Positions 22,888 to 64,000 of a stretch of 64,000 nucleotides of DNA are shown piece by piece; the first letter of the stretch is position 1; each line of letters starts with the position of its first letter. Origin of the DNA: Bispira polyomma. Taxonomy: Eukaryota. A program made the translations under genes and the position numbers. The notes beneath the pieces are model-generated. The model saw only the letters and a program-made list of their open reading frames with translations. It was not told the DNA's origin and searched no databases. The stretch is taken from NCBI GenBank assembly GCA_965649765.1, contig OZ287752.1, positions 81,902,001-81,966,000 of the forward strand. The letters run 5' to 3'.

Positions 22888-25800
22888 TTAAAGTTTTCTT
22901 CCATTACTAGAATAAATATTGCTAACAAGTCTTTTCTGGTCTTCCATATCAAATCCAATACCGTGCAGATAGTTGGATACTGAATTGTATCTGAAATAAC
23001 AAAAAAATATCAACTAAAACATTTTGCTCATCACATGTGTGGTCAAGAATGACTAAACTATATCAACACATATTATATAATCACCTCAACATACCACCTC
23101 CTTCCAACAAGATACTGTCTCATTACCTCAACATACCACCTCCTTCCAACGTACTGTCTCATTACCTCCACATACCACCTCCTTCCAACAACATACTGTC
23201 TCATTACTTTAACATACCACCTCCTTCCAACAAGATACTGTCTCATTACCTCAACATGCCACCTCCTTCCAACAAGACACTGTCGCATTACTTTAACATA
23301 CCACCTCCTTCACACAAGATACTGTCGCATTACTTTAACATACCACCTACTTCCAACAAGATACTGTCTCACTACTTTAACATACCACCTACTTCCAACA
23401 AGATACTGTCTCATTACCTCAACATACCACCTACTTCCAACAAGATACTGTCGCCTTACCTCAACATACCACCTACTTCCAACAAGATACTGTCACATTA
23501 CCTCAACATACCACCTCCTTCCAACAAGATACTGTCTCATTACATCAACATACCACCTACTTCCAACAAGATACTGTCGCATTACCTCAACATACCACCT
23601 ACTTCCCACAAGATACTGTCTCATTACCTCAACATACCACCTCCTTCTAACAAGATACTGTCTCATTACTTTGACATACCACCTCCTTCTAACAAGATAC
23701 TGTCTCATTACCTTAACATACCACCTACTTCCAACAAGATACTGTCTCATTACTTTAACATATCACCTCCTTCCCACAAGATACTGTTGCATCACGTCAA
23801 CATACCACCTCATCCACACAAGATACTGTCTCATTACCTCAACATACCACCTACTTACTACAACATATGATCTCATCCCCACAAGGTACAATCTCATACT
23901 CTCAAAATACCATCTCATCCCCACAAGATACAATTTCAGTCCCTCAACAACAACTTCATCCCCACAACATACATTCTCACTCTCACAAGACACCACTTCA
24001 TCCCCACAAGATACCACCTTAACCTTACAAGATATTATCTCATCCCCACTAAATATCATCATGGTTCCCACAAGCTTAAGTACTCCCAACCTACTTTTCC
24101 TCTATATATTCCAGAAGTGCTTCCATGGTGCTGTACTTGGCCCCTCCAAATGAGGGAAGAAGGCCGTGTTCTTGAATGTCTCTATCTATTTCTTCCCTAT
24201 GAGCTTGTCTGCTTTCCTATATTAAAATAGATGGAACAGACTTTCTTTAGTATAGTATCTGTCATGGATTAGAACATTATGATTTTTATCTCAGTAGACA
24301 CCTCTTAATTTACACCTCTGTATTTCACAGAATCACTAAAAATCTGCAATCTGCTGACATTACTATAAGCAAGTGAGGAGGCTACATTTCATAATGGCTT
24401 CATATAATATCAAAAAGCCATTTGTAACCTCTGCTAGTGAATTGCCCTTCTTCCAGTCACCCATTCATACTTTTACTCTTGTCTCTATAGTAGTAGTTAT
24501 ATTTTATATTCCGATATTATATCAATTTATTGTTATTTTAACTTGCTCGGAATAAAGAATGTGAAATAATATAATGGATTTTAACACAATACAGCAAAAA
24601 CAATAGCACTCAGTAGGATGCACCCCTGCGCCATTGGATACAAAATCAACAGGGTTTGTGTTTTACTTACAGACCTAGGCTTCTCTTAAAGATGGCATAT
24701 CAAAAATAGCTTAATAACCTATTTAACCAAAACACATATTTCTTAGAAGGTATACCAGGTAAATACTCATTAATGCACACAGTAAGTACTTAGCTTTATA
24801 CAAATCTATTCTAAAATTTAGTGGTTTCTTCCTTAGCCCTCGCTCTCCAACAGAGTTTATTGAAAATTAGTTTGCATAACCCTGCTACAAACAAACGAAC
24901 AGACAGCCACTAAAACATAACCTCCTTGGTGGAGGTAAAAAACCCAAACCTCTGTTTTACTGTATTCCAGTGCAATCATGTGTTTATCTGCCCCACACAG
25001 CCCCATCAGCAAGGCCGAAATGATCCCTGTACGATCTTTTCCATGAGCACAACACACAATCCCAGGTACATTCTCAGGATAACACATGACATGGAGTACT
25101 GAAAAATAAGCACAGCAGAGCAAAAATACAGCAGTGTGAACAGTCAGAGGATAGAATCTATTAGTGAGGCAACTTTGCATAATGATAATGACCCTGTCTA
25201 TGTTCTAGGACACATCGTTGGTTGATTGATTCGGTTTTTGCACTTTAGAAGATGTCTCTTCTTTATTCAATCTCATCTAGCACACTGTACTTCTATCTTC
25301 ACTACCTGACTAAGATAATTGGCTCTTACCCAAATTTATTGGTCCCTGAAATATTTGGGCAATTGTTTCATGCCCAAAAAACAAACTCCAAGATCAAAGG
25401 TCATTGAGGTCAGACATTGCATCACTTACCCAAACTCCAAGATCAAAGGCCGTGCAGAGATCAGACACTGCATTAATTAACCAAACTCCAAGATCAAAGG
25501 CCATGCAGAAGTCAGATATTGCATCACTTAACCAAACTCCAAGATCAAAGGCCATGCAGAGATCACACATTGCATCAATTAACCAAACTCCAAGATCAAA
25601 AGCCATGCAGAGGTCAGATATTGCATCACTTAGACAAACTACAAGATCAAAGGCCATGCAGAGATCACACATTGCATCACTTAAAATGTCCAATGGTCCA
25701 AATAATAAGTCTATTTTGACAAGAGGATTACAGATCAATCCAAGACGGGCCTTATGAAAACATAGGGACAATCTAAATTACCTTTCTCTATATTCAATTC

Positions 25801-38658: not shown

Positions 38659-41600
38659 ATGATGACATCAAACGTAGAAATGCAGAATTTCATAGATCAG
38701 GAGAAACAACAACCGTGTATCTCCCCACCTCAGCCGCAAGGTAATCAAAGTTTCATGTAAATATTGGTTAAAAAGAAAGCCTGCCACCTTTAGTTAAGGG
38801 TGACTTTGTGATTTTAAAAATATCAGCAAAAACTGTTACTATGGAGACAAAGTGCGACATGGTCTGATTAGATTAGATTAGAAAACTATGGTAAATTTAG
38901 AATGTTGGTGTTATGTTTATAAGATGAAGAACTTAAAGGTTTAGTAAAGTAAACACATAAACTGATCGCCGAGGAACAGTTTAACATTGGGTCTTAAACT
39001 CAATGGATGTATTATATAAATCTACATTTTTGGTAGTGGAAATACCAAAGAATTATATATAGTTTAATTATATGCTGATTTAAATATTTTAATAAGGATT
39101 TTATCTAGCAAAGTGTAAAATTGTTGCAAAAATCATTTATATTTAACCAGTACATGCTTGACAAACGTGACACAACTCACTAAGAAGAGGAATCAATACC
39201 AAAGTAATATAAGGTCTGCTTAAGAATTGCAATGGCTGCCCATAAAGTTCCTTATTTTTAAAACTGTCGCAATAAAAATTAATATAGAAAAGAGGAATAC
39301 TTCACCATTATTTTACATGATTTAATTTTATTTAATATGGTTAACATTGTTACCGAAGAACAGTTTCATAACCTTTATATTTATGTGTATATGGGCTCCA
39401 AATAAATATAGTAAATGCAGAGTGACGTTTCGGGGGTTCATTTGTGTGTTTACGTTGCTTAATCCTTAAATAGACATTCTTGAACAGTTATATGTCTCTG
39501 TATTGTGTAGATATTTGTTTCTAATATTACTAATATTAAAAAGATTGTCCCCTAAGTTAGACCATTTAGGGAATAAATGTTGAATATAAATTACCAGACT
39601 TAATACCAGCCTTAAGCATTGTCAGGTAGAGGGTGAAAATATTTACTACTTACCACAAAAAGATCATATTTAGTATAAATATTAATTCGAGGGTTCAACA
39701 AGGGATATAAATATGCAACATCATAGTCTGATTTCATTTCGACCGTGGAGTAATGACCTTTTTATCTTATGTTCACTTGATCTCACTGTTTCAACCTCAT
39801 TTTGACCTAGGAACCCCACAAGAATTTCATAGTAAAATTTTTTTCCCAGTGGCATCCTGCTAAATATTTAGAGATCACCACTCTGTGTCAATTTATGATT
39901 TTGCCTAAGAATTTTGTTTCCTTTTTTTTTACTGTGCTGCAACAAACTACACACACACACATATATATATATATAGATATATATATATTTAAGCCATATA
40001 TATATATAGATACCCATATATATATATATATATGTGTGTGTGTGTAGTTTGTTGAAGCACAGTGAAAACAATATAAATATATATATATATATAGTAGAAC
40101 CTCTATTATCCAAAGTTCCATTTTCGAAATATTCAATTTTATCAACTCACTTTCCCAAATATATGTTTTCCTAATGTTTTATTCTGAAATACCTCTTCTA
40201 TTATATGAACCTTTTATTAATCAAACAAAATACTGCTCTCCCATCATCTTTNNNNNNNNNNNNNNNNNNNNNNNNNNNNNNNNNNNNNNNNNNNNNNNNN
40301 NNNNNNNNNNNNNNNNNNNNNNNNNNNNNNNNNNNNNNNNNNNNNNNNNNNNNNNNNNNNNNNNNNNNNNNNNNNNNNNNNNNNNNNNNNNNNNNNNNNN
40401 NNNNNAATGGCAACCCCTCCTAAAAGTGACACTAGAAGAAAGCGTCCAACTTGGGACCAAAAGAATAACCCAATTGAGTTCCTGAGTACAACCTTGGGAT
40501 ACCTTGTAGGTGTAAGTGTTCTGATACGGATGCCATACCTGATATACAAACATGGAGGCATTGTCTTCTTGGTACAATATCTGATGTCACTACTTTTCTT
40601 TGGATTTCCAGTACTCTTACTAGAGATGTACATTGGACAGTTCACCAGTAATGGGATTTTGACTTGTTGGGAGATGTTTCCTCTGTTTACTGGAGTAGGC
40701 TATGCTATGTTGATTATCTGTATTGTCACAGCTTCATCCTATGCAGTGATCAATGCCTGGTCAGTATATTATGCCTTCACCAGCTGGGTGAGCCCACTAC
40801 CTTGGACAACGTGCGATAATGCTTGGAATACTAAGAAGTGCTGGCTTCCTGAGTATGAGGGAACACACTACTACTCGGACCAGTACAATGATTATGGGTA
40901 TGTCAAAAAGACGAATCCTTCAGAGGAGTATTGGATAAATGAATTCCTGAGACTGAGAGATGAAGCAGGTGGGCCACTTTGGTACATTGCTCTGCCTCTG
41001 TTGGGAACATGGATTATAGTGGCACTCATTTTGTTGTTTGGTCCAAAGGTATATGGTAAAGTTGCCTATGTAACCACTCTTCTGCCTTACCTAATTGCTG
41101 TGGTCCTTTTGGCGAGATTTGTAACACTCCCAGGTGCTTTTAAAGGCCTGCAATACCTTTTTTACCCTAACATCCAATATTTTGCGAATGCCAGATCTTG
41201 GATGGATGCAATTCTATCAGCTTTTTGGAACATGGGCATTTCTGTAGGACCGATTATCACCCTGTCCTCGTACAATAAATTCAGGAATGACCTTGTCCGA
41301 GATGCTTTTGTGCTTACTATGGCCCAATTTGTGAGCTGTATTGGTTATGCCATGCTGGTTTTTGCTCTTTATGGTGTTATAGCTGAAAACTATCAGCAAC
41401 CAATGGATGACATTATAGGAGGTGGTGTGTCATTTCTATTCACAGCTATGGCTAGTGGCTTTGGATTTTTTGTTGGTTCCCAGTTCTGGTGTTGCTTATT
41501 TTATATTATGGTCGCACTGATGTGTACCAGAACTCTGCTGGCCATGGCAGAGACTGTAATTACTGCTATCCTGGACCTGATACCAATATTGCGCCAGGTT

Positions 41601-42176
41601 AGGTACATTGTGGTCATTTTTGTCTGCTTTGTCTTGTTTCTGTCAGGACTGCCATATACGCTTCATATTGGGTATGCATTCTTCAATGCAATTGATAGCT
41701 CTATATACGTTAACATGACATTGGTAGGGCTCATGGAGGTAGTCTGTGTGGCCTTCATGTATGGTGTTTTTTCTTATACCTTTACCAATCATGCCTTCTT
41801 ACGCTTTAAGGATGATTTGAGCTTGATGTTTGGTGGTAAGGCCTGCCATTGTATTCCCTGGGTGATCTGCTGGCCCTTCTGGGCCTTTATGTGGTGCATT
41901 ATGGTCCCCCTGATTTTACTGGTTTGCTGGATCTTGAACCTTCAAGATGGGCCCTCAAGTTTAGGTTACTTTGAGATAAGTCAGAGCCTGAAAATGTTTT
42001 GCTCTTTCATGATGCTGTCTCCAGTGCTAGCCATGCTTATTACCCCAACCGTCTTGCTTTGTATAAAAAGTATCAAAACCAGGAGTCTATCCAGGGGACT
42101 GGGGTACCTCATTAAACCGTCCAGGTATTGGGGGCCTGCTTTACCTGAGGACAGAGAGGGAATGAGTGGATATTAG
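38659..42176 (+). CDS. SLC6/NSS-like transporter, copy B; two coding exons (acceptor hidden in the N gap)
   Basis: Exon 38659-38740 (MMTSNVEMQNFIDQEKQQPCISPPQPQ, G|GTAATC) and an uninterrupted ORF 40407-42176 collinear with copy A, 12 aa shorter at the C-terminus. Confidence 0.9.
40252..40405. other. Assembly gap (N run) covering the SLC6-B splice acceptor
   Basis: Run of N. The equivalent interval in copy A (16874-16936) is a (TA)n tract plus the acceptor. Confidence 1.
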
Positions 42177-51436: not shown

Positions 51437-52607
51437 TGTGCAAGATCGGTCATATTTGCACATATTTTTTTACTTACAGCTGAATTATGCAAAAGATACC
51501 CAAATATGATACAGAGTTTTACACACTTCATACAGCTGCACAAATTCTATTCTTTTTGCAGGTATCAATATGATATATAAATCATATCATTATATTATAT
51601 ATCATTTATTTCATATAGAATATTTTATGTAGAATGTTTCATGTATTAATTTGATATATTTCAGCTGGTCAGCGACACAATTTTCACTGAAAACCAGAGA
51701 AGGAGATTATAACTTTCTACCATTACAATACATTGATGAATATATACAACATTTTTAAACATTTGCAGAGTAGTAACATATATCTATATACCCAATAGTA
51801 AAATACACAAGCATAAATACATACTATATATATAGAGCATGACACACTGGAGTTAGCCTTGACATAACACAAACTATGAACATTATACAAATGTAACAGA
51901 AAGAGTTGTTCATTGATTTAGACTTTTTTTAAATATTGTCAATCTAAAGTACAATTTCAAGATGTAACTATCAATTAGCTAAACACATTTAAAAAAACAT
52001 TGTGCATATTTCAATTTTATATTTACATTCATTTTAATTTGTGACTTAAATCATAACTGTGTCTTCACGTAGAGTGCATTGTTGCAAATTGCATTAAATG
52101 AGTACATTATATGAAAATCCAACATTTATACATTTAAATATATATGTTGTAATGACAAATTACAACATATAATTGGCTGTATAGACAACACTATTTATTC
52201 ATACTTTACAAATTGTGCCTATTATACTATTTACAAAATACCGATATATTCACAAAATGTTAACAATGTTGGAAAGTATTATATAACAGCAAAACATCAA
52301 CAGAATAATAGCTACACCAATAATTAATATAAGTAAAGATGGAAATAGTTTAAAAATATACGTGATTAATCATATTTAATAATACTACAATTAATTTCTA
52401 CCACAAACCCCGAAAACTGCCTAACAACATTGTGCACGAAATGCTCATTTTGTAATCAAAATAAACTATACACAGATACAAATACAAAGGTTACAGACCA
52501 GCACCAGAATGAGCTGATCTGTTACAGAAGAACCTTCAGTTTGTCAGCAACTGGCTCAAAGAAACGACTACTAAAAACACTTAAGCTAAGGTTTTGCACA
52601 CATGTAT

Positions 52608-53982
52608 TGAAGAACTGACATTTTGAGGGAATATTGCCGAAATAGTGTAGCTCAGTAATGAAGAACTAACATTTTGAGGGAATATTGCCGAAATAGTGTG
52701 GCTAAGTAATGAAGAACTAACATTTTGAGGGAATATTGCCGAAATAGTGTGGCTAAGTAATGAAGAACTAACATTTTGAGGGAATATTGCCGAAATAGTG
52801 TGGCTAAGTAATGAAGAACTAACATTTTGAGGGAATATTGCCGAAATAGTGTGGCTAAGTAATGAAGAACTGACATTTTGAGGGAATATTGCCGAAATAG
52901 TGTGGCTAAGTAATGAAGAACTGACATTTTGAGGGAATATTGCCGAAATAGTGTGGCTAAGTAATGAAGAACTGACATTTTGAGGGAATATTGCCGAAAT
53001 AGTGTGGCTAAGTAATGAAGAACTAACATTTTGAGGGAATATTGCCGAAATAGTGTGGCTAAGTAATGAAGAACTAACATTTTGAGGGAATATTGCCGAA
53101 ATAGTGTGGCTAAGTAATGAAGAACTAACATTTTGAGGGAATATTGCCGAAATAGTGTGGCTAAGTAATGAAGAACTAACATTTTGAGGGAATATTGCCG
53201 AAATAGTGTGGCTAAGTAATGAAGAACTGACATTTTGAGGGAATATTGCCGAAATAGTGTGGCTAAGTAATGAAGAACTGACATTTTGAGGGAATATTGC
53301 CGAAATAGTGTGGCTAAGTAATGAAGAACTGACATTTTGAGGGAATATTGCCGAAATAGTGTGGCTAAGTAATGAAGAACTGACATTTTGAGGGAATATT
53401 GCCGAAATAGTGTGGCTAAGTAATGAAGAACTGACATTTTGAGGGAATATTGCCGAAATAGTGTGGCTAAGTAATGAAGAACTAACATTTTGAGGGAATA
53501 TTGCCGAAATAGTGTGGCTAAGTAATGAAGAACTAACATTTTGAGGGAATATTGCCGAAATAGTGTGGCTAAGTAATGAAGAACTGACATTTTGAGGGAA
53601 TATTGCCGAAATAGTGTGGCTAAGTAATGAAGAACTGACATTTTGAGGGAATATTGCCGAAATAGTGTGGCTAAGTAATGAAGAACTAACATTTTGAGGG
53701 AATATTGCCGAAATAGTGTGGCTAAGTAATGAAGAACTAACATTTTGAGGGAATATTGCCGAAATAGTGTGGCTAAGTAATGAAGAACTAACATTTTGAG
53801 GGAATATTGCCGAAATAGTGTGGCTAAGTAATGAAGAACTAACATTTTGAGGGAATATTGCCGAAATAGTGTGGCTAAGTAATGAAGAACTAACATTTTG
53901 AGGGAATATTGCCGAAATAGTGTGGCTAAGTAATGAAGAACTAACATTTTGAGGGAATATTGCCGAAATAGTGTAGCTCAGT
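52608..53982. repeat. Highly homogeneous 51-bp tandem array (about 27 units)
   Basis: Unit TGAAGAACT(A/G)ACATTTTGAGGGAATATTGCCGAAATAGTGTGGCTAAGTAA. Internal units differ at essentially one A/G site. Confidence 0.98.
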
Positions 53983-54573: not shown

Positions 54574-57500
54574 TTAGACCGGTGTGCCCTCTTCTTTTAC
54601 TTTATCATCTAGTCGTGGAGGTAGAACAGGTCTGTGGGGGGCTGGATTGGGTCCTGGAAGGTATTCAGGGACTTCTGATGAACCCTGGTTTTAACAAAAC
54701 AAGTAAAGTATCATAAAAAAATAAATATATAACATATATGTTAAAATATAATATAAGGCTACATGAACAATATTAAAGTGGGACTAAAATCCCAACAAAA
54801 GGGGTTCTATATTGATGTTAACTGTTAGATGTTATTGATGGCAATAAGATATTGCTATTAAAAGACTGACTAACACTATATGATAGTTTCCATCAGAAAA
54901 TTATAAGTTGTAATAATTTGTAAGATAGAAAATTATTATTTTCATTTATGTTTTTATATAATACAAGTTCAACTCACGTTGTGCCTTTTTACCTGCACAG
55001 GCAATGGTTGTGGCTGTTTAAATCTGAAACCACTTTCCATCAATGCCTTCTTCAAAGTGGCTGCCGTTTTTTCAGCATCACCAGTTTGTCTTAAAAGCCA
55101 TCCCTCGAGCATGCTGTAGATTCTGTCCCATGAATGATGTGGATTGTCCATCTCAATCTGATCCATTTGGCCCTTAAGAAGTCCCAGACGTCGACCAACC
55201 ATCTTCCAATGTACTCCAATATGGTCAGCAAGTTCACACAACACAGTTTGCTGAACAGCTAATTAAAATAACAAAACTGGAATTTGTATGGATAAAGTTT
55301 GAGGTGAAATACCCTAAGCTATAGAGAGCAAGGTTTATCGTTAAGATACTATGACCAGCTTGCCAAATTTGTAGTTGGCAAAATGTCGGTGTCAGGGTTA
55401 AGCTAGCATTTTTGTGTTTTACATATCTCAATAGACATGACTTTGCACAGTAGTATTGATACAAAGAAAAAGAAATATACTTTAGCCAGCACAATTAACT
55501 AAACACTCGTTGAAATTGTTTTCTAGAAACTGTATTAACATTTGTCACATTTGGAGACCACTTTGACCAATAGACCTGAAAGACAAATAACTGAATAAAC
55601 ATAACATTGCATACTTTCAAAGTTGGACAGATTACTTCCTTCTAATTCCAAGCTGCTGCTGCTGCTGCTGAATTTCACCTGTGAAAACATAATCACAAAA
55701 TGCTTTCTAAAGATTGTAAGTGCAATGTTACATTTCCATACATCTAATCTGTCAAATTACTGTTTTTATCTGGTATCTTCATTTTCACATGAGTAAAAAC
55801 TTGTGCACTCAATTTTTTAGGTTTTAGTTAGCAACTAAAACATTCGAAAGTGTGATACTGTAGGATATGTTTAATTTTTCAACACTATTTAGTACAAATT
55901 TGTTACCACCAAAAGTAAACTATTCATTGTGATGCTTTAAAAGAATGACAACGTCATGCCAAATGTTTTACATCTTAATCAAAACAAACCAAGCAGCCGA
56001 ACAAGAAAAATACTAACTTTACTAACCGTACAAAACTACTGAGAAATCAGCTCTTAATAGTCTCAAAATAAGATAAACATTAGCTTTAATAACTGAATGT
56101 TTTACATTATTTGTGAACATTATTTTAACATATAGTGTGTGTAATAGAATAGACAGTGAAAGCAATAGTTTGCAAAAATTCTTACATTGTGAGCATGGGT
56201 CTTTAAGTATTCTTCCAAATATGCAACTTGTTTCTGTGCAACTTCTTTGTCTGAAACGTGATCAGAACTTTACACAATAGATAAAACTGGTGTAAAATAT
56301 CACAACAACTGAGGTAAATATATACCAAACAGCAATTTTAAAAGTATATTAGGGTTACTTAGTCATCACCTGATTATATCATGAGATACTACATTTGTAG
56401 ACAAATGGTTACAGCAACACATATATTTATATATAGAAATACTCCAGTCCTCAAAAGAGGTAATGAATTAAAAACGTTATCAACCTTTTGCTTATGACAA
56501 ATATTGGTATATTATAGAATATATTATCGTATCAGATTGGTGTATTATAAAATTTGCAAATACAAAGTGATAAACTCTAAATGTGCAGTATACAATTATT
56601 TAAAGCTTCAATAGGGTTCGCAATCGTCTTGATAAGTTATTCTACATTTATAAGAAATAATTTATGATCCATAATCATCTTTGATTCAATTTTTGTCCAT
56701 TGTTTTTATTATATATCGATTTGCCTTAATAATCAATATGTGGAATAATTAACTTAATTTATTCAACATTTCGACACTTACATACACATATCACTATAGA
56801 TTCATGAAGTACCTTTTGATGGAGGTCTTACAAATAAGGATGGTACAGCCATTGTGGATGATGCTAGAGGACAACCAGCGTTAATAGCATCATTTTCTAC
56901 TGCTAGCACTTTCCGTAGGAGCCACTGTTGCACTTGACCAACATCTGATGGACAGAGATTTCTTAGGTGACAATGTGAGCAGTCTACAGTTATACTGGGT
57001 ACCAGCCCAGGCCACCAAGTCCTTATCAGTTTAAGCATTATGTTGCAAATGGTATCTGCTAATTTCCACACTCGATGAATTGGTTCAGTTTCTACCTTTC
57101 CTCTTATCATGACCTTCAAGGAGTTTTTCATTAAATGTACAAAGAGAGACAAGTTGTCCACGATTGCCCATAAACCATTTTTGAACACGATTCGTTGTTG
57201 TGTCTCCGATGCATCATAGAGATTGCGCATGACCTCTACACAAAATTGATGCCAATACGTGCTTGGAATGCTGCCTTTAAGTTGAAAGTTCAGGGCCAAT
57301 TCATCTTGGCTACAGACACACAGGTGTGGAATCTTGTCTTTTAGGTCAGTTGGAATGCTTTTTTGGTCAACAAACCAAGGAATAAACATTGATGGGTCGG
57401 CACCAGCTGGATGACCAAAGTCATATGCAATATTTAAGTGCTGGAGCAACTGGGCAACAGTTTCTGCTTCTTCATCGAAGTTCCTATTGTGAAGAAACAC

Positions 57501-60500
57501 CTTCAGTAAAGACCTGCTGACCAGACCTGTCCTTTTCACTCTTTCTAGAGAAAGTTTGTAGTTATCCTCCACATCCTCAAAAAGTTGCTTTCTTAATATC
57601 TTTACTATTTTGTGAAATGGGACTTCCAGTGCCTCATGGTGAAACAAACAACTCAACAGACCTTTGAAAAAGTCAAAGTCGAAAAAAATGTATTTTTCCA
57701 TGTGTGGGTTCCCTTGAAACCAAAGAGCCATACCATAGCTATGCAATTGCTTTAAACAAGCTTTGAGATCATCAGAAGATTCTGGATATTGCTTCAATAA
57801 TTTGGTATATAACTCAGCAGCATCGGTGAATAAAACAATCTTTTTCTGTTTTATAAGCATGGGTATCCTATCCGAAAAGCTGGCTTCTGAATAATTTGAT
57901 GCCTTTTTAATCTGGAGTTTAGATCTGTTCTGACTGGTTAATGGGTAATTTGATATACATGTATTTCCAGAAGACGTGTTTGTGGTTTTATTTGTTGTTT
58001 CATTGTTGGCATCTGTTTCCCCCTCAATGTGCATCTGATTTCCTGTATCTGCTTTTTTTTCTTCTGAATTTGCCTTTATATTAAGTTTCACTTCAATGAG
58101 TTCTGGTCCGGTCTTGTCAGATGTTGTACTTTGCTCCACCTTCTTTACAACATCTGCTATTGTACCAATTTTGCCAAATTGAGAATAGAAGTCCACATAG
58201 ATTTTAGGTATTTCAACCTGATAAATGTCCTTTTCGCTGAGATCTTCTATGTACTTGCTCAACTTTATTAAGTTCTCACAGCATGGATGATCTTGTTGCA
58301 CTGATGTAACAAATACTCTTGTTTCAAAGTTATCATACAATGATTGATAGGTTTCCATCTTGCTTCTGGTTAATGTCTCATCATCAGCAGCATAAAAATC
58401 AGCAGTGACCATTTCCAAGAGATCCATTTCATTTTTCAATCTTGCTTTTATCTGTTCAGTGAATTTTACCACCGTTTGTGGGATTTGGTCTTGATAGATT
58501 TCATCTGCTTTGGTTAACACTGGGATAACCATACACCTTGGAGACCTAGAAAGTGTTGCCTGGAGCCACTGGAAAGATACGTCATAGTTGTCAGAGGTTA
58601 CAGCATGGCAAAATAGCACTACATTCTGAGAAGAGTTATAGTGAAGAAATTGGCTGGTATAATAATACCCAGGGTGACCTCCGAGATCAAACGCCAGGAT
58701 GACCTTTCCATTCTTTAGTGTCCAACTCCATACATCAAACACTACTGTTCTATCATCTGTCCCAGTTACATGAATCCTTCCAAGTAAAATGGTTTTAATT
58801 AATGATGTTTTACCAATACCTTGGTCACCAATTGTCAGAATTCTTAAAATACACAGTGCAACAAGTTGCTGGCGTTGGTCTTCAGTCCAGTTGACCTTGC
58901 TGTCATCAGTACCTGTAGTGAGAGGGTGGAATGATTAAACATTGAAATATATGCTTTTAAAAGTGATACATTTTCAAATTTATATAATAAGGTACATATA
59001 AACTTAAAGTGTAACTATAAGCATATTACCAATAGGGATAAATAATTCTCTTATGTAAACACATTCTCTTATGTAAACAATGTAAACATGGTTTTACATA
59101 GTTTTAAGCTGGGTTTTCAATCATTGTGATAAATTATTCTACATTGAAAAAAAAGAATTTTCGATCGATACCATTATCTTTGATTTAATTTTGGAACAAA
59201 TTAAATGTCCATGCAGAAAGTACAGTCTTTCACACACAAATTGATCTAGAAGCATAAATATATATAATAATTAATCGACCTATTTTATAGATTTTTGTTT
59301 CAATATCTTTCCATCAATCTAAATACAGTATCACTTGCAACTTACATTCCTGAGTTTGCAGTATTTCTACAATATCCTTAAATCCATTTTCCACTGCATA
59401 ATCCAATGCACTCTTCCCATGGGCATCCTTTGTGTCTATTTCTGCTCCACAGTCCAAGAGAAGGGATACATTGTTGCTGTGATTGTACAATGATGCAATC
59501 ATCAATGGAGTCATCCTAAAGTATTTAAACACATACAGAATAGTGCCATGAGAATTGGTTCAGTTTAGGTGCTTTAGGGATAAAGGAAAATCACACTGAG
59601 TGACTGCTAATCAGTTAAATAGTTCACATTTTAAACCAAATATGTCCAGATTTATATTTTAAAATAAGAAAGGACATCCTGAAAAAAAGCCAATATCTGA
59701 ATTAGTTTCTTTTCACTGATAATATTAAAAAAAAATCATATTTGTATGTAATGTAAATAAACTGCTTTTAAAAGCTATATATCATAATGGAATATTTATA
59801 TAGTGCAGAATCCACTTGATAGCATCAAGTGATCGGTGTCCATAGAATGATTAAGGTCACAATATAAATAAAAAATTTAGTTTAAAGATTACAAGCTTCC
59901 TTAAAAAGGTATGCTTTAATTGTTTTCAAAGCTTTTAAAATTTGGTTTTAAAGCTATATATATTAGGCTACTTTTAGAATACATGTAAATTGTCTATTAA
60001 AAGGTTAAAAGATTAATTTTTCAAAATTTCTATACTTACTGAGATTCAGACTTTGCAGAAACATTCTTGTTATATGAGACAATGAGCTTCAGAAGGTTGT
60101 TTTGTCCTACAGCAGCCGCATAGTGCAGTGCACTATAACCTTCCTTATCAGTGTTCAAAACATCAATCTTTTTCTCAAGAAGCCATTTCACAGTTTCAAT
60201 AGTACTGTAGCCCTGCAGTGCAAACACTAGGGCATTGTTCTTATCAGTTGTTTGTGCATTAATATCAGCTTCATACTTGGCTAACAGGTCCAAGATCTGT
60301 ACTTTGCCTTTATATGCTGCATAATGGAGGGCACTAAGTCCATTTATATTACAATAGTTTACATCAATGCCTTGATCTATCAACCACTTGATGGATAAAC
60401 AGTCTCCTGAATTCATTGACACTGCCATGATGGGATTATAACCATTATTATTTATTGCCTTTATGTTTGCTCCATTTTCCTGTAATAGTTTTAAGACATC

Positions 60501-63500
60501 TAGGTGACCTTTGTGAGCTGCATAAAGAACAGCAGTTGAACCATTTGTGTCACATTGGTTCACATCAACACCTTGTTCTATCAACCACTTGATGGATAAA
60601 CAGTCTCCTGAACCCATTGACGCTTCCATGATGGGATTACAACCATTATTATTTACTGCCTTTATGTTTGCTCCATTTTCCTGTAACAGTTTTAAGACAT
60701 CTAGGTGACCTTTGTGAGCTGCATGAATAGTAGCAGTAGAACCATTTGTGTTACATTGGTTCACATCAACGCCTTGATCTATCAACCACTTGATAGATAA
60801 ACAGTCTCCTGAATCCATTGACACTGTCATGATGGGATTAATACCATTATTATTTACTGCCTTTATGTTTGCTCCATTTTCCTGTAACAGTTTTAAGACA
60901 TCTAGGTGATCTTTTGCAGCTGCATAAAGAACAGCAGTAGAACCATTTGTGTCACATTGGTTCACATCAACACCTTGTTCTATCAACCACTTGATGGATA
61001 AACAGTCTCCTGAACCTATTGACGCTTTCATGATGGGATTACAACCATTATTATTTACTGCCTTTATGTTTGCTCCATTTTCCTGTAATAGTTTTAAGAC
61101 ATCTAGGTGATCTTTTTCAGCTGCATAAAGAACAGCAGTAGAACCATTTGTGTCACATTGGTTCACATCAACACCTTGTTCTATCAACCACTTGATGGAT
61201 AAACAGTCTCCTGAACCCATTGACACTGCCATGATGGGATTAATACCATTATTATTTACTACCTTTATGTTTGCTCCATTTTCCTGTAATAGTTTTAAGA
61301 CATCTAGGTGACCTTCGTGAGCTGCATAAAGAACAGCAGTAGAACCATTTGTGTCACATTGGTTCACATCAACACCTTGTTCTATCAACCACTTGATGGA
61401 TAAACAGTCTCCTGAACCTATTGACGCTGTCATGATGGGATTACAACCATTATTATTTACTGCCTTTATGTTTGCTCCATTTTTCTGTAATAGTTTTAAG
61501 ACATCTAGGTGACCTTTGTGAGCTGCATGAATAGTAGCAGTAGAACCATTTGTGTCACATTGGTTCACATCAACACCTTGTTCTATCAACCACTTGATAG
61601 ATAAACAGTCTCCTGAATCCATTGACACTGTCATGATGGGATTAATACCATTATTATTTACTGCCTTTATGTTTGCTCCATTTTCCTGTAATAGTTTTAA
61701 GACATCTAGGTGACCTTTGTGAGCTGCATGAATAGTAGCAGTAGAACCATTTGTGTCACATTGGTTCACATCAACACCTTGTTCTATCAACCACTTGATG
61801 GATAAACAGTCTCCTGAACCCATTGACGCTTTCATGATGGGATTACAACTATTATTATTTACTGCCTTTATGTTTGCTCCATTTTCCTGTAATAGTTTTA
61901 AGACATCTAGGTGATCTTTTTCAGCTGCATAAAGAACAGCACTATCACCATCTGTGTCACATTGGTTCACATCAACACCTTGTTCTATCAACCACTTGAT
62001 GGATAAACAGTCTCCTGAACCCATTGACGCTTTCATGATGGGATTAATACCATTATTATTTACTGCCTTTATGTTTGCTCCATTTTCCTGTAACAGTTTT
62101 AAGACATCTAGGTGATCTTTTGCAGCTGCATAAAGAACAGCACTATCACCATCTGTGTCACATTGGTTCACATCAACACCTTGTTCTATCAACCACTTGA
62201 TAGATAAACAGTCTCCTGAATCCATTGACACTGTCATGATGGGATTAATACCATTATTATTTACTGCCTTTATGTTTGCTCCATTTTCCTGTAACAGTTT
62301 TAAGACATCTAGGTGATCTTTTTCAGCTGCATAAAGAACAGCAGTAGAACCATTTGTGTCACATTGGTTCACATCAACACCTTGTTCTATCAACCACTTG
62401 ATGGATAAACAGTCTCCTGAACCTATTGACGCTTTCATGATGGGATTACAACCATTATTATTTACTGCCTTTATGTTTGCTCCATTTTCCTGTAATAGTT
62501 TTAAGACATCTAGGTGATCTTTTTCAGCTGCATAAAGAACAGCAGTAGAACCATTTGTGTCACATTGGTTCACATCAACACCTTGTTCTATCAACCACTT
62601 GATGGATAAACAGTCTCCTGAACCTATTGACGCTGTCACGATGGGATTACAACCATTATTATCTACTGCCTTTATGTTTGCTCCATTTTTCTGTAATAGT
62701 TTTAAGACATCTAGGTGACCTTTGTGAGCTGCATGAATAGTAGCAGTAGAACCATCTGTGTCACATTGGTTCACATCAACACCTTGTTCTATCAACCACT
62801 TGATAGATAAACAGTCTCCTGAATCCATTGACACTGTCATGATGGGATTAATACCATTATTATTTACTGCCTTTATGTTTGCTCCATTTTCCTGTAATAG
62901 TTTTAAGACATCTAGGTGACCTTTGTGAGCTGCATAAAGAACAGCAGTTGAACCATCTGTGTCACATTGGTTCACATCAACACCTTGTTCTATCAACCAC
63001 TTGATGGATAAACAGTCTCCTGAACCTATTGACGCTAACATGATGGGATTATGACCATAGTTATCTACTGCCTTTATGTTTGCTCCATTTTCCTGTAACA
63101 GTTTTAAGACATCTAGGTGATCTTTTGCAGCTGCATAAAGAACAGCAGTAGAACCATTTGTGTCACATTGGTTCACATCAACACCTTGTTCTATCAACCA
63201 CTTGATGGATAAACAGTCTCCTGAACCCATTGACGCTTTCATGATGGGATTAATACCATTATTATTTACTGCCTTTATGTTTGCTCCATTTTCCTGTAAT
63301 AGTTTTAAGACATCTAGGTGACCTTTGTGAGCTGCATGAATAGTAGCAGTAGAACCATTTGTGTCACATTGGTTCACATCAACACCTTGTTCTATCAACC
63401 ACTTGATGGATAAACAGTCTCCTGAACCTATTGACGCTAACATGATGGGATTATGACCATAGTTATCTACTGCCTTTATGTTTGCTCCATTTTCCTGTAA

Positions 63501-64000
63501 CAGTTTTAAGACATCTAGGTGATCTTTTGCAGCTGCATAAAGAACAGCAGTAGAACCATTTGTGTCACATTGGTTCACATCAACACCTTGTTCTATCAAC
63601 CACTTGATAGATAAACAGTCTCCTGAACCTATTGACGCTAACATGATGGGATTATGACCATAGTTATCTACTGCCTTTATGTTTGCTCCATTTTTCTGTA
63701 ATAGTTTTAAGACATCTAGGTGACCTTTGTGAGCTGCATGAATAGTAGCAGTAGAACCATTTGTGGCACATTGGTTCACATCAACGCCTTGATCTATCAA
63801 CCACTTGATAGATAAACAGTCTCCTGAATCCATTGACACTGCCATGATGGGATTAATACCATTATTATTTACTGCCTTTATGTTTGCTCCATTTTCCTGT
63901 AACAGTTTTAAGACATCTAGGTGATCTTTTGCAGCTGCATAAAGAACAGCAGTAGAACCATTTGTGTCACATTGGTTCACATCAACACCTTGTTCTATCA
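54574..64000 (-). CDS. Roco-family protein: ankyrin array - Roc GTPase - COR - Death domain - Pro-rich tail; 5' end lies beyond the window
   Basis: Phase-consistent exons: >64000-60040 (donor CA|GTAAGT), 59515-59346, 58912-56813, 55258-54993 (or 54978), 54684-54574. Junctions downstream of COR are less certain. Confidence 0.85.
54978..55258 (-). CDS. Death-domain exon of the Roco gene
   Basis: LCELADHIGVHWKMVGRRLGLLKGQMDQIEMDNPHHSWDRIYSMLEGWLLRQ...ATLKKAL matches the death-domain pattern (W..l.r.LGl....id.I..d........ML..W). Confidence 0.88.
56813..58912 (-). CDS. Roc-COR exon of the Roco gene
   Basis: The frame is open upstream of ORF 56802-58742. P-loop GDQGIGKTS (58803-58829), DDRT (G2), FDLGGH..YYYTSQFL (Roc G3 region), VLTKAD (G4). 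COR-like LKQLHSYGMALWF, FIPWFV, VFKNGL, WPGL...CSHC. Confidence 0.88.
60040..64000 (-). CDS. Giant ankyrin-repeat exon: at least 18 near-identical 201-nt (67-aa, two-ankyrin) units plus 3 divergent ankyrins
   Basis: ORF 60036-63980 alternates a 33-aa repeat DTNGSTAVLYAAxKxHLDVLKLLQENGANIKAV and a 34-aa repeat NNNGxNPIMxxSxxSGDCLSIKWLIEQGVDVNQC. No stops or indels. It continues past the window edge. Confidence 0.96.

Follow-up and report, generated by a model that had tools for sequence, protein, structure and literature searches.

Introduction

Near-identical tandem repeats with hypervariable binding residues are a hallmark of fungal NLRs of allorecognition and immunity, and they are rare in animal proteins. 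The fungal NLRs with such high-internal-conservation (HIC) repeats include the HET-E/HNWD proteins with WD40 repeats and NACHT proteins with ankyrin (ANK) repeats, such as Pa_3_8560 (PMC4986451, PMC13449251). About 0.8% of the metazoan ANK, TPR, and WD repeats are of the HIC kind (PMC4986451), and HIC repeats in animals have been noted only for ATPase-containing, NLR-like proteins (PMC13449251). Two further described systems are ROCO proteins. The DAPK1 group has the architecture kinase-ANK-Roc-COR-Death (PMC6337361), and the ROCO genes of brown algae, which shuffle exons for leucine-rich repeats (LRRs), are candidate immune receptors (PMC11378527). Here, we describe a gene at the end of a 64,000-nt stretch of the genome of Bispira polyomma (contig C5, positions 81902001-81966000, of an assembly of 1.04 Gb in 75 contigs), which is called the window throughout. 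The gene contains a giant array of near-identical ANK repeats that precedes predicted Roc, COR, and Death domains. In the literature searched, no description was found of an ANK array that is self-similar, is variable in its groove, and belongs to an animal ROCO-Death protein. With moderate confidence, we explain the locus as a homogenized ANK array with a diverse groove, a ROCO switch, and a Death output, and the copy in the window as probably null.

The ankyrin array

The coding strand of the array is the minus strand. Tandem Repeats Finder placed a 201-nt tandem array at 60357-64000, with 18.1 copies, 93% matches, and 0% indels. When the translation was cut every 67 residues, each 201-nt unit turned out to encode 67 amino acids, which form two ANK repeats, A (33 amino acids) and B (34 amino acids). 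The part of the array that lies inside the window (60351-64000, minus strand; defined by Tandem Repeats Finder, translation, Pfam Ank, and AlphaFold2) comprises 18 complete units, U6-U23, and part of U5. For features beyond its end, the window numbering was carried past 64000 into the next 10 kb (extended coordinates). The array runs five units past the window and ends about 1 kb beyond it, at extended coordinate 65003 or close to it, so that the count from the assembly is 23 near-identical units in total, from U1 at 64773-64973 to U23 at 60351-60551. An N-cap precedes the units, and a divergent unit (unit 24) and further ANK repeats follow them, all in one exon. The frame of this exon is open over 1,691 codons, without an intron, and together with the N-cap it reaches about extended coordinate 65111. 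The resulting ankyrin solenoid of about 50 repeats is the N-terminal domain. A first-pass annotation made from the letters of the window had described at least 18 near-identical tandem units in one intron-less exon, and this description holds, with 18 units in the window, 23 overall, and an open frame.

The mean pairwise nucleotide identity of the units is 93.5% (23 units, 1,541 amino acids), and the protein identity between four-unit blocks is 85-86%. The array thus lies within the definition of HIC repeats, namely 80-100% repeat identity over at least 100 amino acids. Distinct units account for 21 of the 23, and the similarity of units does not decay with their distance along the array. Two pairs of non-adjacent units that had been reported as identical in protein (units 3 and 5, units 8 and 15 of the first-pass annotation) are identical in DNA as well (U8 and U10, U13 and U20).

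An array of this kind might be an assembly expansion or a chimera that arose from collapsed or duplicated reads. In accordance with this explanation, no read or contig bridges the array, and the public sequence that was found, three DNA runs from two samples, consists of short contigs that end inside the array. However, the absence of indels, the intact frame of 1,691 codons, and the high number of distinct units all speak against it, as do the exact (100%) unit-specific contigs in the three runs from two samples and the single-copy sequence at both flanks. A like architecture is present at six other loci and in the assembly of a second species. On the basis of this recurrence and of the exact unit-specific contigs, the array is not regarded as an artefact, and we rate an origin in the assembly as extremely unlikely.

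At one site inside the array (L015:1312, window position about 61112), a contig of the second sample (run X3) departs from the reference, with 15 loose letters. This could represent a different unit neighbor in the second sample or a paralogue, and it is too weak to call a polymorphism.

Variation is concentrated on the concave face

The mapping of variation to the protein surface was based on the DARPin register, on DSSP, and on published surface classes. The AlphaFold2 model of four units has a predicted local distance difference test score (pLDDT) of 96.8 and forms a canonical ANK solenoid with two helices per repeat. Helix 1 comprises residues 7-14 in repeat A and residues 7-13 in repeat B (DSSP on this model). 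The units align to DARPins without a shift (PDB alignments), and DARPin fusions are the top Foldseek neighbors of the model, with the ANK domains of ankyrin-B/R, RNase L, and espin as further structural neighbors. In a survey of 176 ANK structures, positions 32-12 in its own numbering were classified as concave and enriched in interactions, and positions 1, 3, 8, and 33 were reported to determine specificity (PMC8415598). With an offset of +2, the latter correspond, as a set, to positions 2, 3, 5, and 10 in DARPin numbering. The most diverse positions of the same survey correspond to DARPin positions 3, 5, 13, and 14 (PMC8415598).

Among the 18 units in the window, 40 of the 201 nucleotide columns are variable, and 24 of the 30 variable codons alter the amino acid. 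The variants are N/D, ST/DS, VLY/TIH, A/H/E, K/E, and D/G in repeat A, and N/Y, I/H/C/Y, A/L/K/T/E, M/I, and D/G/N in repeat B; every variant that the first-pass annotation had listed is present. The top variable positions are B5, A13, A5, A1, A10, A3, B13, B33, B3, B10, A14, and B14 (the letter denotes the repeat). They are common to the arrays described below, and all of them fall in the concave class of the published scheme (PMC8415598). The proposal that the variation lies on the concave binding face is thus borne out by the DARPin register and the published concave positions, which agree.

Synonymous and non-synonymous changes were compared with parsimony-style event counts, which ignore recombination and for which the different arrays are not fully independent samples. 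For whole units, the minimum numbers were 6-7 synonymous versus 46-47 non-synonymous events, in keeping with the little silent variation noted before. With a partition that was chosen after seeing the data, the ratio of non-synonymous to synonymous polymorphism (pN/pS) was 5.5 in the first 15 residues of each repeat, whereas it was 0.18 in the remaining 37 codons, and the minimum numbers of non-synonymous and synonymous events were 40:2 and 7:4, respectively. The value for the codons past residue 15 fits the observation that the outer helices are almost invariant. The test was repeated with an a priori surface set of 15 codons, which comprised the randomized positions of DARPins and their beta-turn neighbors. 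For the array in the window, the ratio of non-synonymous events at this surface to synonymous events of the whole unit was 4.0 (p=3.8e-4), so that the dN/dS check suggested in the first-pass annotation gave an omega above 1 at surface codons that had been fixed in advance. In the array in the window, selection is likely to have been diversifying and not simply relaxed, and the data are suggestive of this in the other arrays. The strongly non-uniform distribution of changes indicates that selection shaped the array before any inactivation.

The units are also mosaics. All four gametes were observed for 84 of 171 informative site pairs, at least 6 exchanges (Rm) are required within the 201 nt, and in a PHI-like test incompatibility was lower between neighboring sites (p=0.0008). 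These three tests support the view that unequal crossover or gene conversion produced the mosaic, as had been proposed before. A dozen positions of the concave, ligand-contacting face have remained diverse, and their variants are shuffled from unit to unit.

Tandem identical units are also a possible substrate for mitotic recombination, and somatic shuffling of repeats might generate receptor diversity within an individual. Nothing observed here points to it directly. The contigs of the two samples had no alternative letters or indels on the stretch examined, and concerted evolution in the germline explains everything that was seen. Somatic shuffling is hence considered to be hardly credible, and germline exchange is preferred.

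Domain architecture of the gene

Four exons, all on the minus strand, are joined by canonical, phase-compatible GT-AG junctions and encode the large ANK part, a small ANK part, Roc-COR, and Death. The large exon contains, in addition to the array, the divergent C-terminal ANK repeats (60040-60350; unit 24 and about 1.5 repeats), and its donor CA|GTAAGT is at 60040/60039. The domain searches were run exon by exon, on separate exons. The Pfam families Ank_4, Ank_2, and Ank matched at 60036-60752, which covers the last array units and the divergent repeats, with E-values of about 1e-37 to 1e-41. The small ANK exon (59346-59515, 170 nt) encodes two repeats (Pfam Ank_2, 8.6e-12), and its AG acceptor and GT donor are in phase with both neighbors. 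It is followed by the Roc-COR exon of about 700 codons (56813-58912; Pfam Roc and sub-threshold COR) and by the Death exon, which includes the stop codon (54969-55258; Pfam Death PF00531, 5.8e-10) and has an alternative GT donor at 54992.

When the Roc-COR exon was taken with its true 5′ end, Roc (PF08477) scored 31.7 bits against a cut-off of 27. Motif reading identified the P-loop (G1) GDQGIGKTS of Roc at 58803-58829 and, downstream, DLGG (G3) and TKAD (G4). The homologue search yielded nine matches, all with at most 49% identity, and the best match of a profile built from the exon and nine homologues was the Roc domain of LRRK2 (5e-7). COR-A and COR-B followed in the right order with 18.9 versus a cut-off of 35.3 bits and 18.3 versus 27 bits, respectively, both sub-threshold; in one homologue, COR-B reached 2.2e-6. 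The nearest ESM Atlas clusters contain eukaryotic Roc and COR-A (COR-A in 71-82% of the members), some of them with Death, and molluscs are the commonest phylum in them. NACHT and NB-ARC were not found by Pfam in this nucleotide-binding exon, where Roc and, below cut-off, COR matched instead; the NCBIfam scan of the exon gave no match, and ZU5 and UPA were not found in the exon-by-exon Pfam scans of the gene. Taken together, the predicted architecture is ANK-Roc-(COR)-Death, with a weak COR part, and the domain order ANK-Roc-COR-Death given in the first-pass annotation holds.

Between Roc and COR, the exon has a long low-complexity insert (residues about 230-345) that is rich in Asn, Thr, Glu, and Lys and poorly conserved among the homologues.

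Paralogues and a second species

At least 74 matches to the Roc-COR exon were found in the genome. The paralogues each have their own 201-nt array, the close relatives (76-77% amino acid identity) as well as a distant one (38%). The array at C11:34.19 Mb has 30 units (95% match between units), and the arrays at C2:12.74 Mb, C11:54.27 Mb, C12:48.02 Mb, and C10:56.05 Mb have 24 units (96%), 8 units (91%), 26 units (92%), and 43 units (93%), respectively. At C11:55.57 Mb, a further array with an open frame of 1,105 amino acids lies beside a decayed Roc-COR exon. Death exons adjoin the paralogues on their downstream side. The copy at C11:34.19 Mb is fully intact: it has 2,175 codons from start to donor, its Roc-COR exon is open, and its Death exon is undamaged. 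At C11:54.27 Mb, the ANK exon is intact and the Roc-COR exon is open. The paralogue search that had been suggested in the first-pass annotation thus revealed further ANK-Roc-COR-Death family arrays, with the same positions variable. The locus in the window is best explained as a member of a birth-and-death family of cytoplasmic ANK-Roc-COR-Death (ROCO) proteins.

For units of one array, the nucleotide identity is 0.91-0.96; it drops to 0.81-0.84 between close paralogues and to 0.56-0.60 in comparisons with the C12 gene. The higher identity within arrays than between paralogues shows that the arrays undergo concerted evolution. The entropy profiles per position correlate in all array pairs (rho 0.28-0.53), and across arrays the entropy at the a priori surface positions is 0.68 bits, compared to 0.16 bits at the rest (p=3.6e-5). 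For five other arrays, the surface-to-synonymous ratios were 1.6, 2.0, 2.5, 0.9, and 2.1, and the framework ratio was 0.18-0.55. Of all arrays measured, the one in the window has the strongest signal of diversification.

The second species (ENA ERZ22147071) has the same exon plan, with about 48-50% identity of Roc-COR. Arrays were found at two of its loci, one of 13 units at 91% and one of 5 units at 74%, and no array was found within 10 kb of its first homologue locus. In this species too, entropy was higher at the surface than at the rest (0.86 versus 0.20, p=5.5e-6), and its variable positions correlate with those of the array in the window (rho 0.47).

Three additional observations were made on family members. 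The largest family array, at C10:56049000-56057660, has 43 units in an open frame of 3,108 codons, and its 3′ end runs into unrelated sequence; a Roc-COR exon was not found within 10 kb downstream, and this ANK array may have become an orphan or been re-attached. The 30-unit array (C11:34192861-34202860) has a higher-order periodicity of three units and only 14 distinct units. Two inverted, near-identical family remnants are located about 30 kb apart at C9:43645211-43648677 and C9:43678003-43681469; in each of them, 2.4 of the 201-nt units are present, along with one ANK and one Death exon.

The 5′ end of the copy in the window

Three paralogues start at a conserved ATG, which is located in the exon of the array and precedes the N-cap by a few codons. 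In the window copy, this family start codon is TTG (extended coordinates 65152-65150), and owing to a 4-nt deletion at 65105/65104, the first 16 codons of the ancestral gene no longer share the frame of the array. The ANK frame has a single ATG (65135-65133), and four stop codons come after it. The 5′ lesions are covered, without differences, by exact contigs from both samples, which shows that the lesions are real. The window copy is otherwise open, with 1,691 codons for ANK, about 700 for Roc-COR, and an open Death exon. Due to the loss of the start codon and the 4-nt frameshift, it is probably a very young pseudogene or a null allele, unless a start is provided by an upstream exon that was not seen.

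The latter case deserves attention. The copy might still be working if an upstream exon is spliced to the AG at about 65096, or if translation starts elsewhere, and the lesions would then be irrelevant. The pyrimidine-rich sequence ttttcaacag at this site is an acceptor in the right phase, and all other exons are still open. However, the three paralogues keep ATG where the window copy has TTG, the 4-nt deletion breaks the frame, the sole in-frame ATG precedes four stops, a transposon-like ORF (open reading frame) lies upstream, and RNA evidence, that is, an RNA run containing the gene, was not found. We regard a working copy as possible and yet rather unlikely, and a recent loss of function is preferred. 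A 34-nt mini-intron that would rescue the in-frame ATG was rejected because of its wrong phase and because it is too short.

The transposon-like ORF, which resembles a transposon-derived protein, is situated about 2 kb upstream of the array (L006:4114-4449, extended coordinates about 67114-67449), and a 147-nt tandem repeat is located near it (L006:7589-8410). Both may be relevant to the damaged 5′ end. The intact paralogue at C11:34.19 Mb starts with MGNCC, while other paralogues start with MSD or MAD; MGNCC is a possible acylation signal, i.e., a candidate for N-myristoylation and palmitoylation.

Recognition surface or structural solenoid

How might such a family work? Unequal crossover or gene conversion keeps the 201-nt units near-identical within each gene, and the groove would form a recognition surface that is diversified in the germline. 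Ligand binding would control the Roc-COR GTPase switch, and the Death domain would then recruit death-fold adaptors and trigger cell-death or inflammatory signaling. This would be the logic of the fungal HIC NLRs on a ROCO chassis. We infer from the sequence that the groove may serve as a ligand sensor, that the Death output may be gated by the GTPase, and that the role may lie in immunity or cell death.

Several results weigh against this reading. The fully intact paralogue (C11:34.19 Mb) has a ratio of 1.6 that is not significant (p=0.17), and an omega above 1 is absent in the 43-unit C10 array (0.9). With a surface-only synonymous baseline, no single array is significant; with the same baseline, pooling reveals an excess of non-synonymous relative to synonymous events at the surface (odds ratio 3.3, p=2e-4). 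The 52 non-surface codons of the array in the window have a ratio near 1 (1.14), which stems mainly from positions beside the surface (A6, A8-10, A15, B10, and B11). Much of the pattern could result from relaxed constraint on exposed residues, combined with purifying selection that preserves the fold. Furthermore, the COR assignment rests on sub-threshold matches, and the AlphaFold2 prediction for the Roc-COR exon, made with 10 homologues, is poor (pLDDT 40). Several members are disabled: the C2 copy has a TAG at codon 117, and the copy at C11:55.57 Mb and two C8 copies are decayed, with many stops. No RNA run containing the gene was found among the public runs.

Some of these results would also fit a structural or scaffold solenoid, which would act as a spring or platform as in ankyrins and NOMPC, would be self-similar because of recent unequal crossover, and would owe its surface differences to relaxed constraint. 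The fold search lists ankyrin-B/R and other long ANK solenoids as close matches, in several arrays the omega of the surface codons lies around 1-2 and does not reach significance, and the array length varies widely, from 8 to 43 units. Nevertheless, the surface ratio is 4.0 (p=4e-4) in the window array and 2.0-2.5, with p<0.05, in three others; multi-step codon changes have occurred at B5, A13, and B10; and the same positions are variable in the second species. In addition, the family shows birth-and-death turnover and has a Death domain. A mere scaffold is thus judged to be unlikely, and the groove-diverse receptor is retained as the preferred explanation.

As a more far-reaching and tentative idea, lophotrochozoan worms might have an unrecognized class of intracellular receptors, i.e., ROCO GTPases with a Death output and a giant ANK sensor that is diversified in the germline by repeat shuffling and groove selection. 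Such receptors would be an animal, GTPase-based system that has converged on the fungal HIC NLRs, and null alleles would segregate among them, the window copy being one example. Repeat shuffling on a Roc-COR/Death chassis, in paralogues and in a second species, suggests that its recruitment for recognition diversity did not depend on the NLR architecture. For ROCO proteins, most functions of which are unknown, this would provide a receptor role that can be tested, in the immunity of invertebrates or in cell death, and the arrays, as natural DARPin-like libraries, could guide a search for ligands.

Other features of the window

The remaining features of the window are not related to the array. 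An intron-less ORF of 589 codons on the plus strand (40407-42176) encodes a sodium:neurotransmitter symporter (Pfam SNF, 5.6e-96), and a run of N lies directly upstream of it (about 40220-40400). A 51-nt minisatellite at 52604-53982 has 27 copies with 99% identity and creates a spurious minus-strand ORF of 431 codons that consists of a 17-amino acid repeat. A 42-nt tandem repeat at 23083-23876 (19 copies, 89%) is located where the GC skew is strongly negative (22-24 kb).

Comparison with known systems

Canonical ankyrins (24 ANK repeats, followed by ZU5-UPA-Death) are likewise single proteins in which a long ANK solenoid is combined with a Death domain, and they are structural neighbors of the array. 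In contrast, the worm gene has Roc-COR and no ZU5 or UPA in its Pfam scans, and the repeats of ankyrins diverge from each other and are conserved between species. DARPins share with the worm array an invariant, consensus-like framework, units in register, and a diversity that is confined to positions 3, 5, 13, 14, and 33 and their neighbors. However, DARPins are man-made libraries with two to three internal repeats, whereas the worm array is natural and has at least 46 such repeats.

The DAPK1 group resembles the worm family in having ANK before Roc-COR, a C-terminal Death domain, and no LRRs. The worm family differs by the lack of a kinase and of a calmodulin-regulatory segment, as the intact paralogue starts directly at the ANK N-cap; it and two other paralogues begin only a few codons before it. 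Moreover, the DAPK1 group has 8 ANK repeats, compared to about 50 or more highly self-similar repeats in the worm family, and it is a single conserved gene rather than a multigene family. The worm Roc is only weakly similar to solved ROCO proteins. The LRR-ROCO genes of brown algae likewise combine a ROCO GTPase with sensor repeats that are diversified by unit shuffling and are under diversifying selection, and for them, too, an immune role has been proposed from sequence alone. In the algal genes, however, each LRR has its own exon, diversity arises by exon shuffling and alternative splicing, and a Death domain is lacking, whereas the worm ANK repeats are in one intron-less exon and vary by unequal crossover or conversion.

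The differences to the fungal HIC NLRs concern the chassis. Their switch is a STAND ATPase (NACHT or NB-ARC), and that of the worm family is a Roc-COR GTPase. The order is reversed, with N-terminal repeats and a C-terminal Death domain in the worm family, the host is an animal, the repeating unit is an ANK pair, and the worm family is known from its sequence. The first-pass annotation had proposed an animal ankyrin-based equivalent of these receptors, and this proposal stands in part: the architecture, the mosaic structure, the groove variation, and the HIC parallel favor it, but the window copy lacks the family start codon and has a 5′ frameshift. The parallel itself holds at the level of the family and in the second species. 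By parsimony-style counts, hypervariable positions on the binding face that are probably under diversifying selection are found in the window array (ratio 4.0) and, more weakly, in the paralogues. Like the fungal genes, the worm genes have near-identical tandem repeats that are maintained by concerted evolution and vary at a few positions of the concave face, and in both cases the families mix HIC and low-conservation members, undergo turnover with frequent pseudogene formation, and have an association with a cell-death domain.

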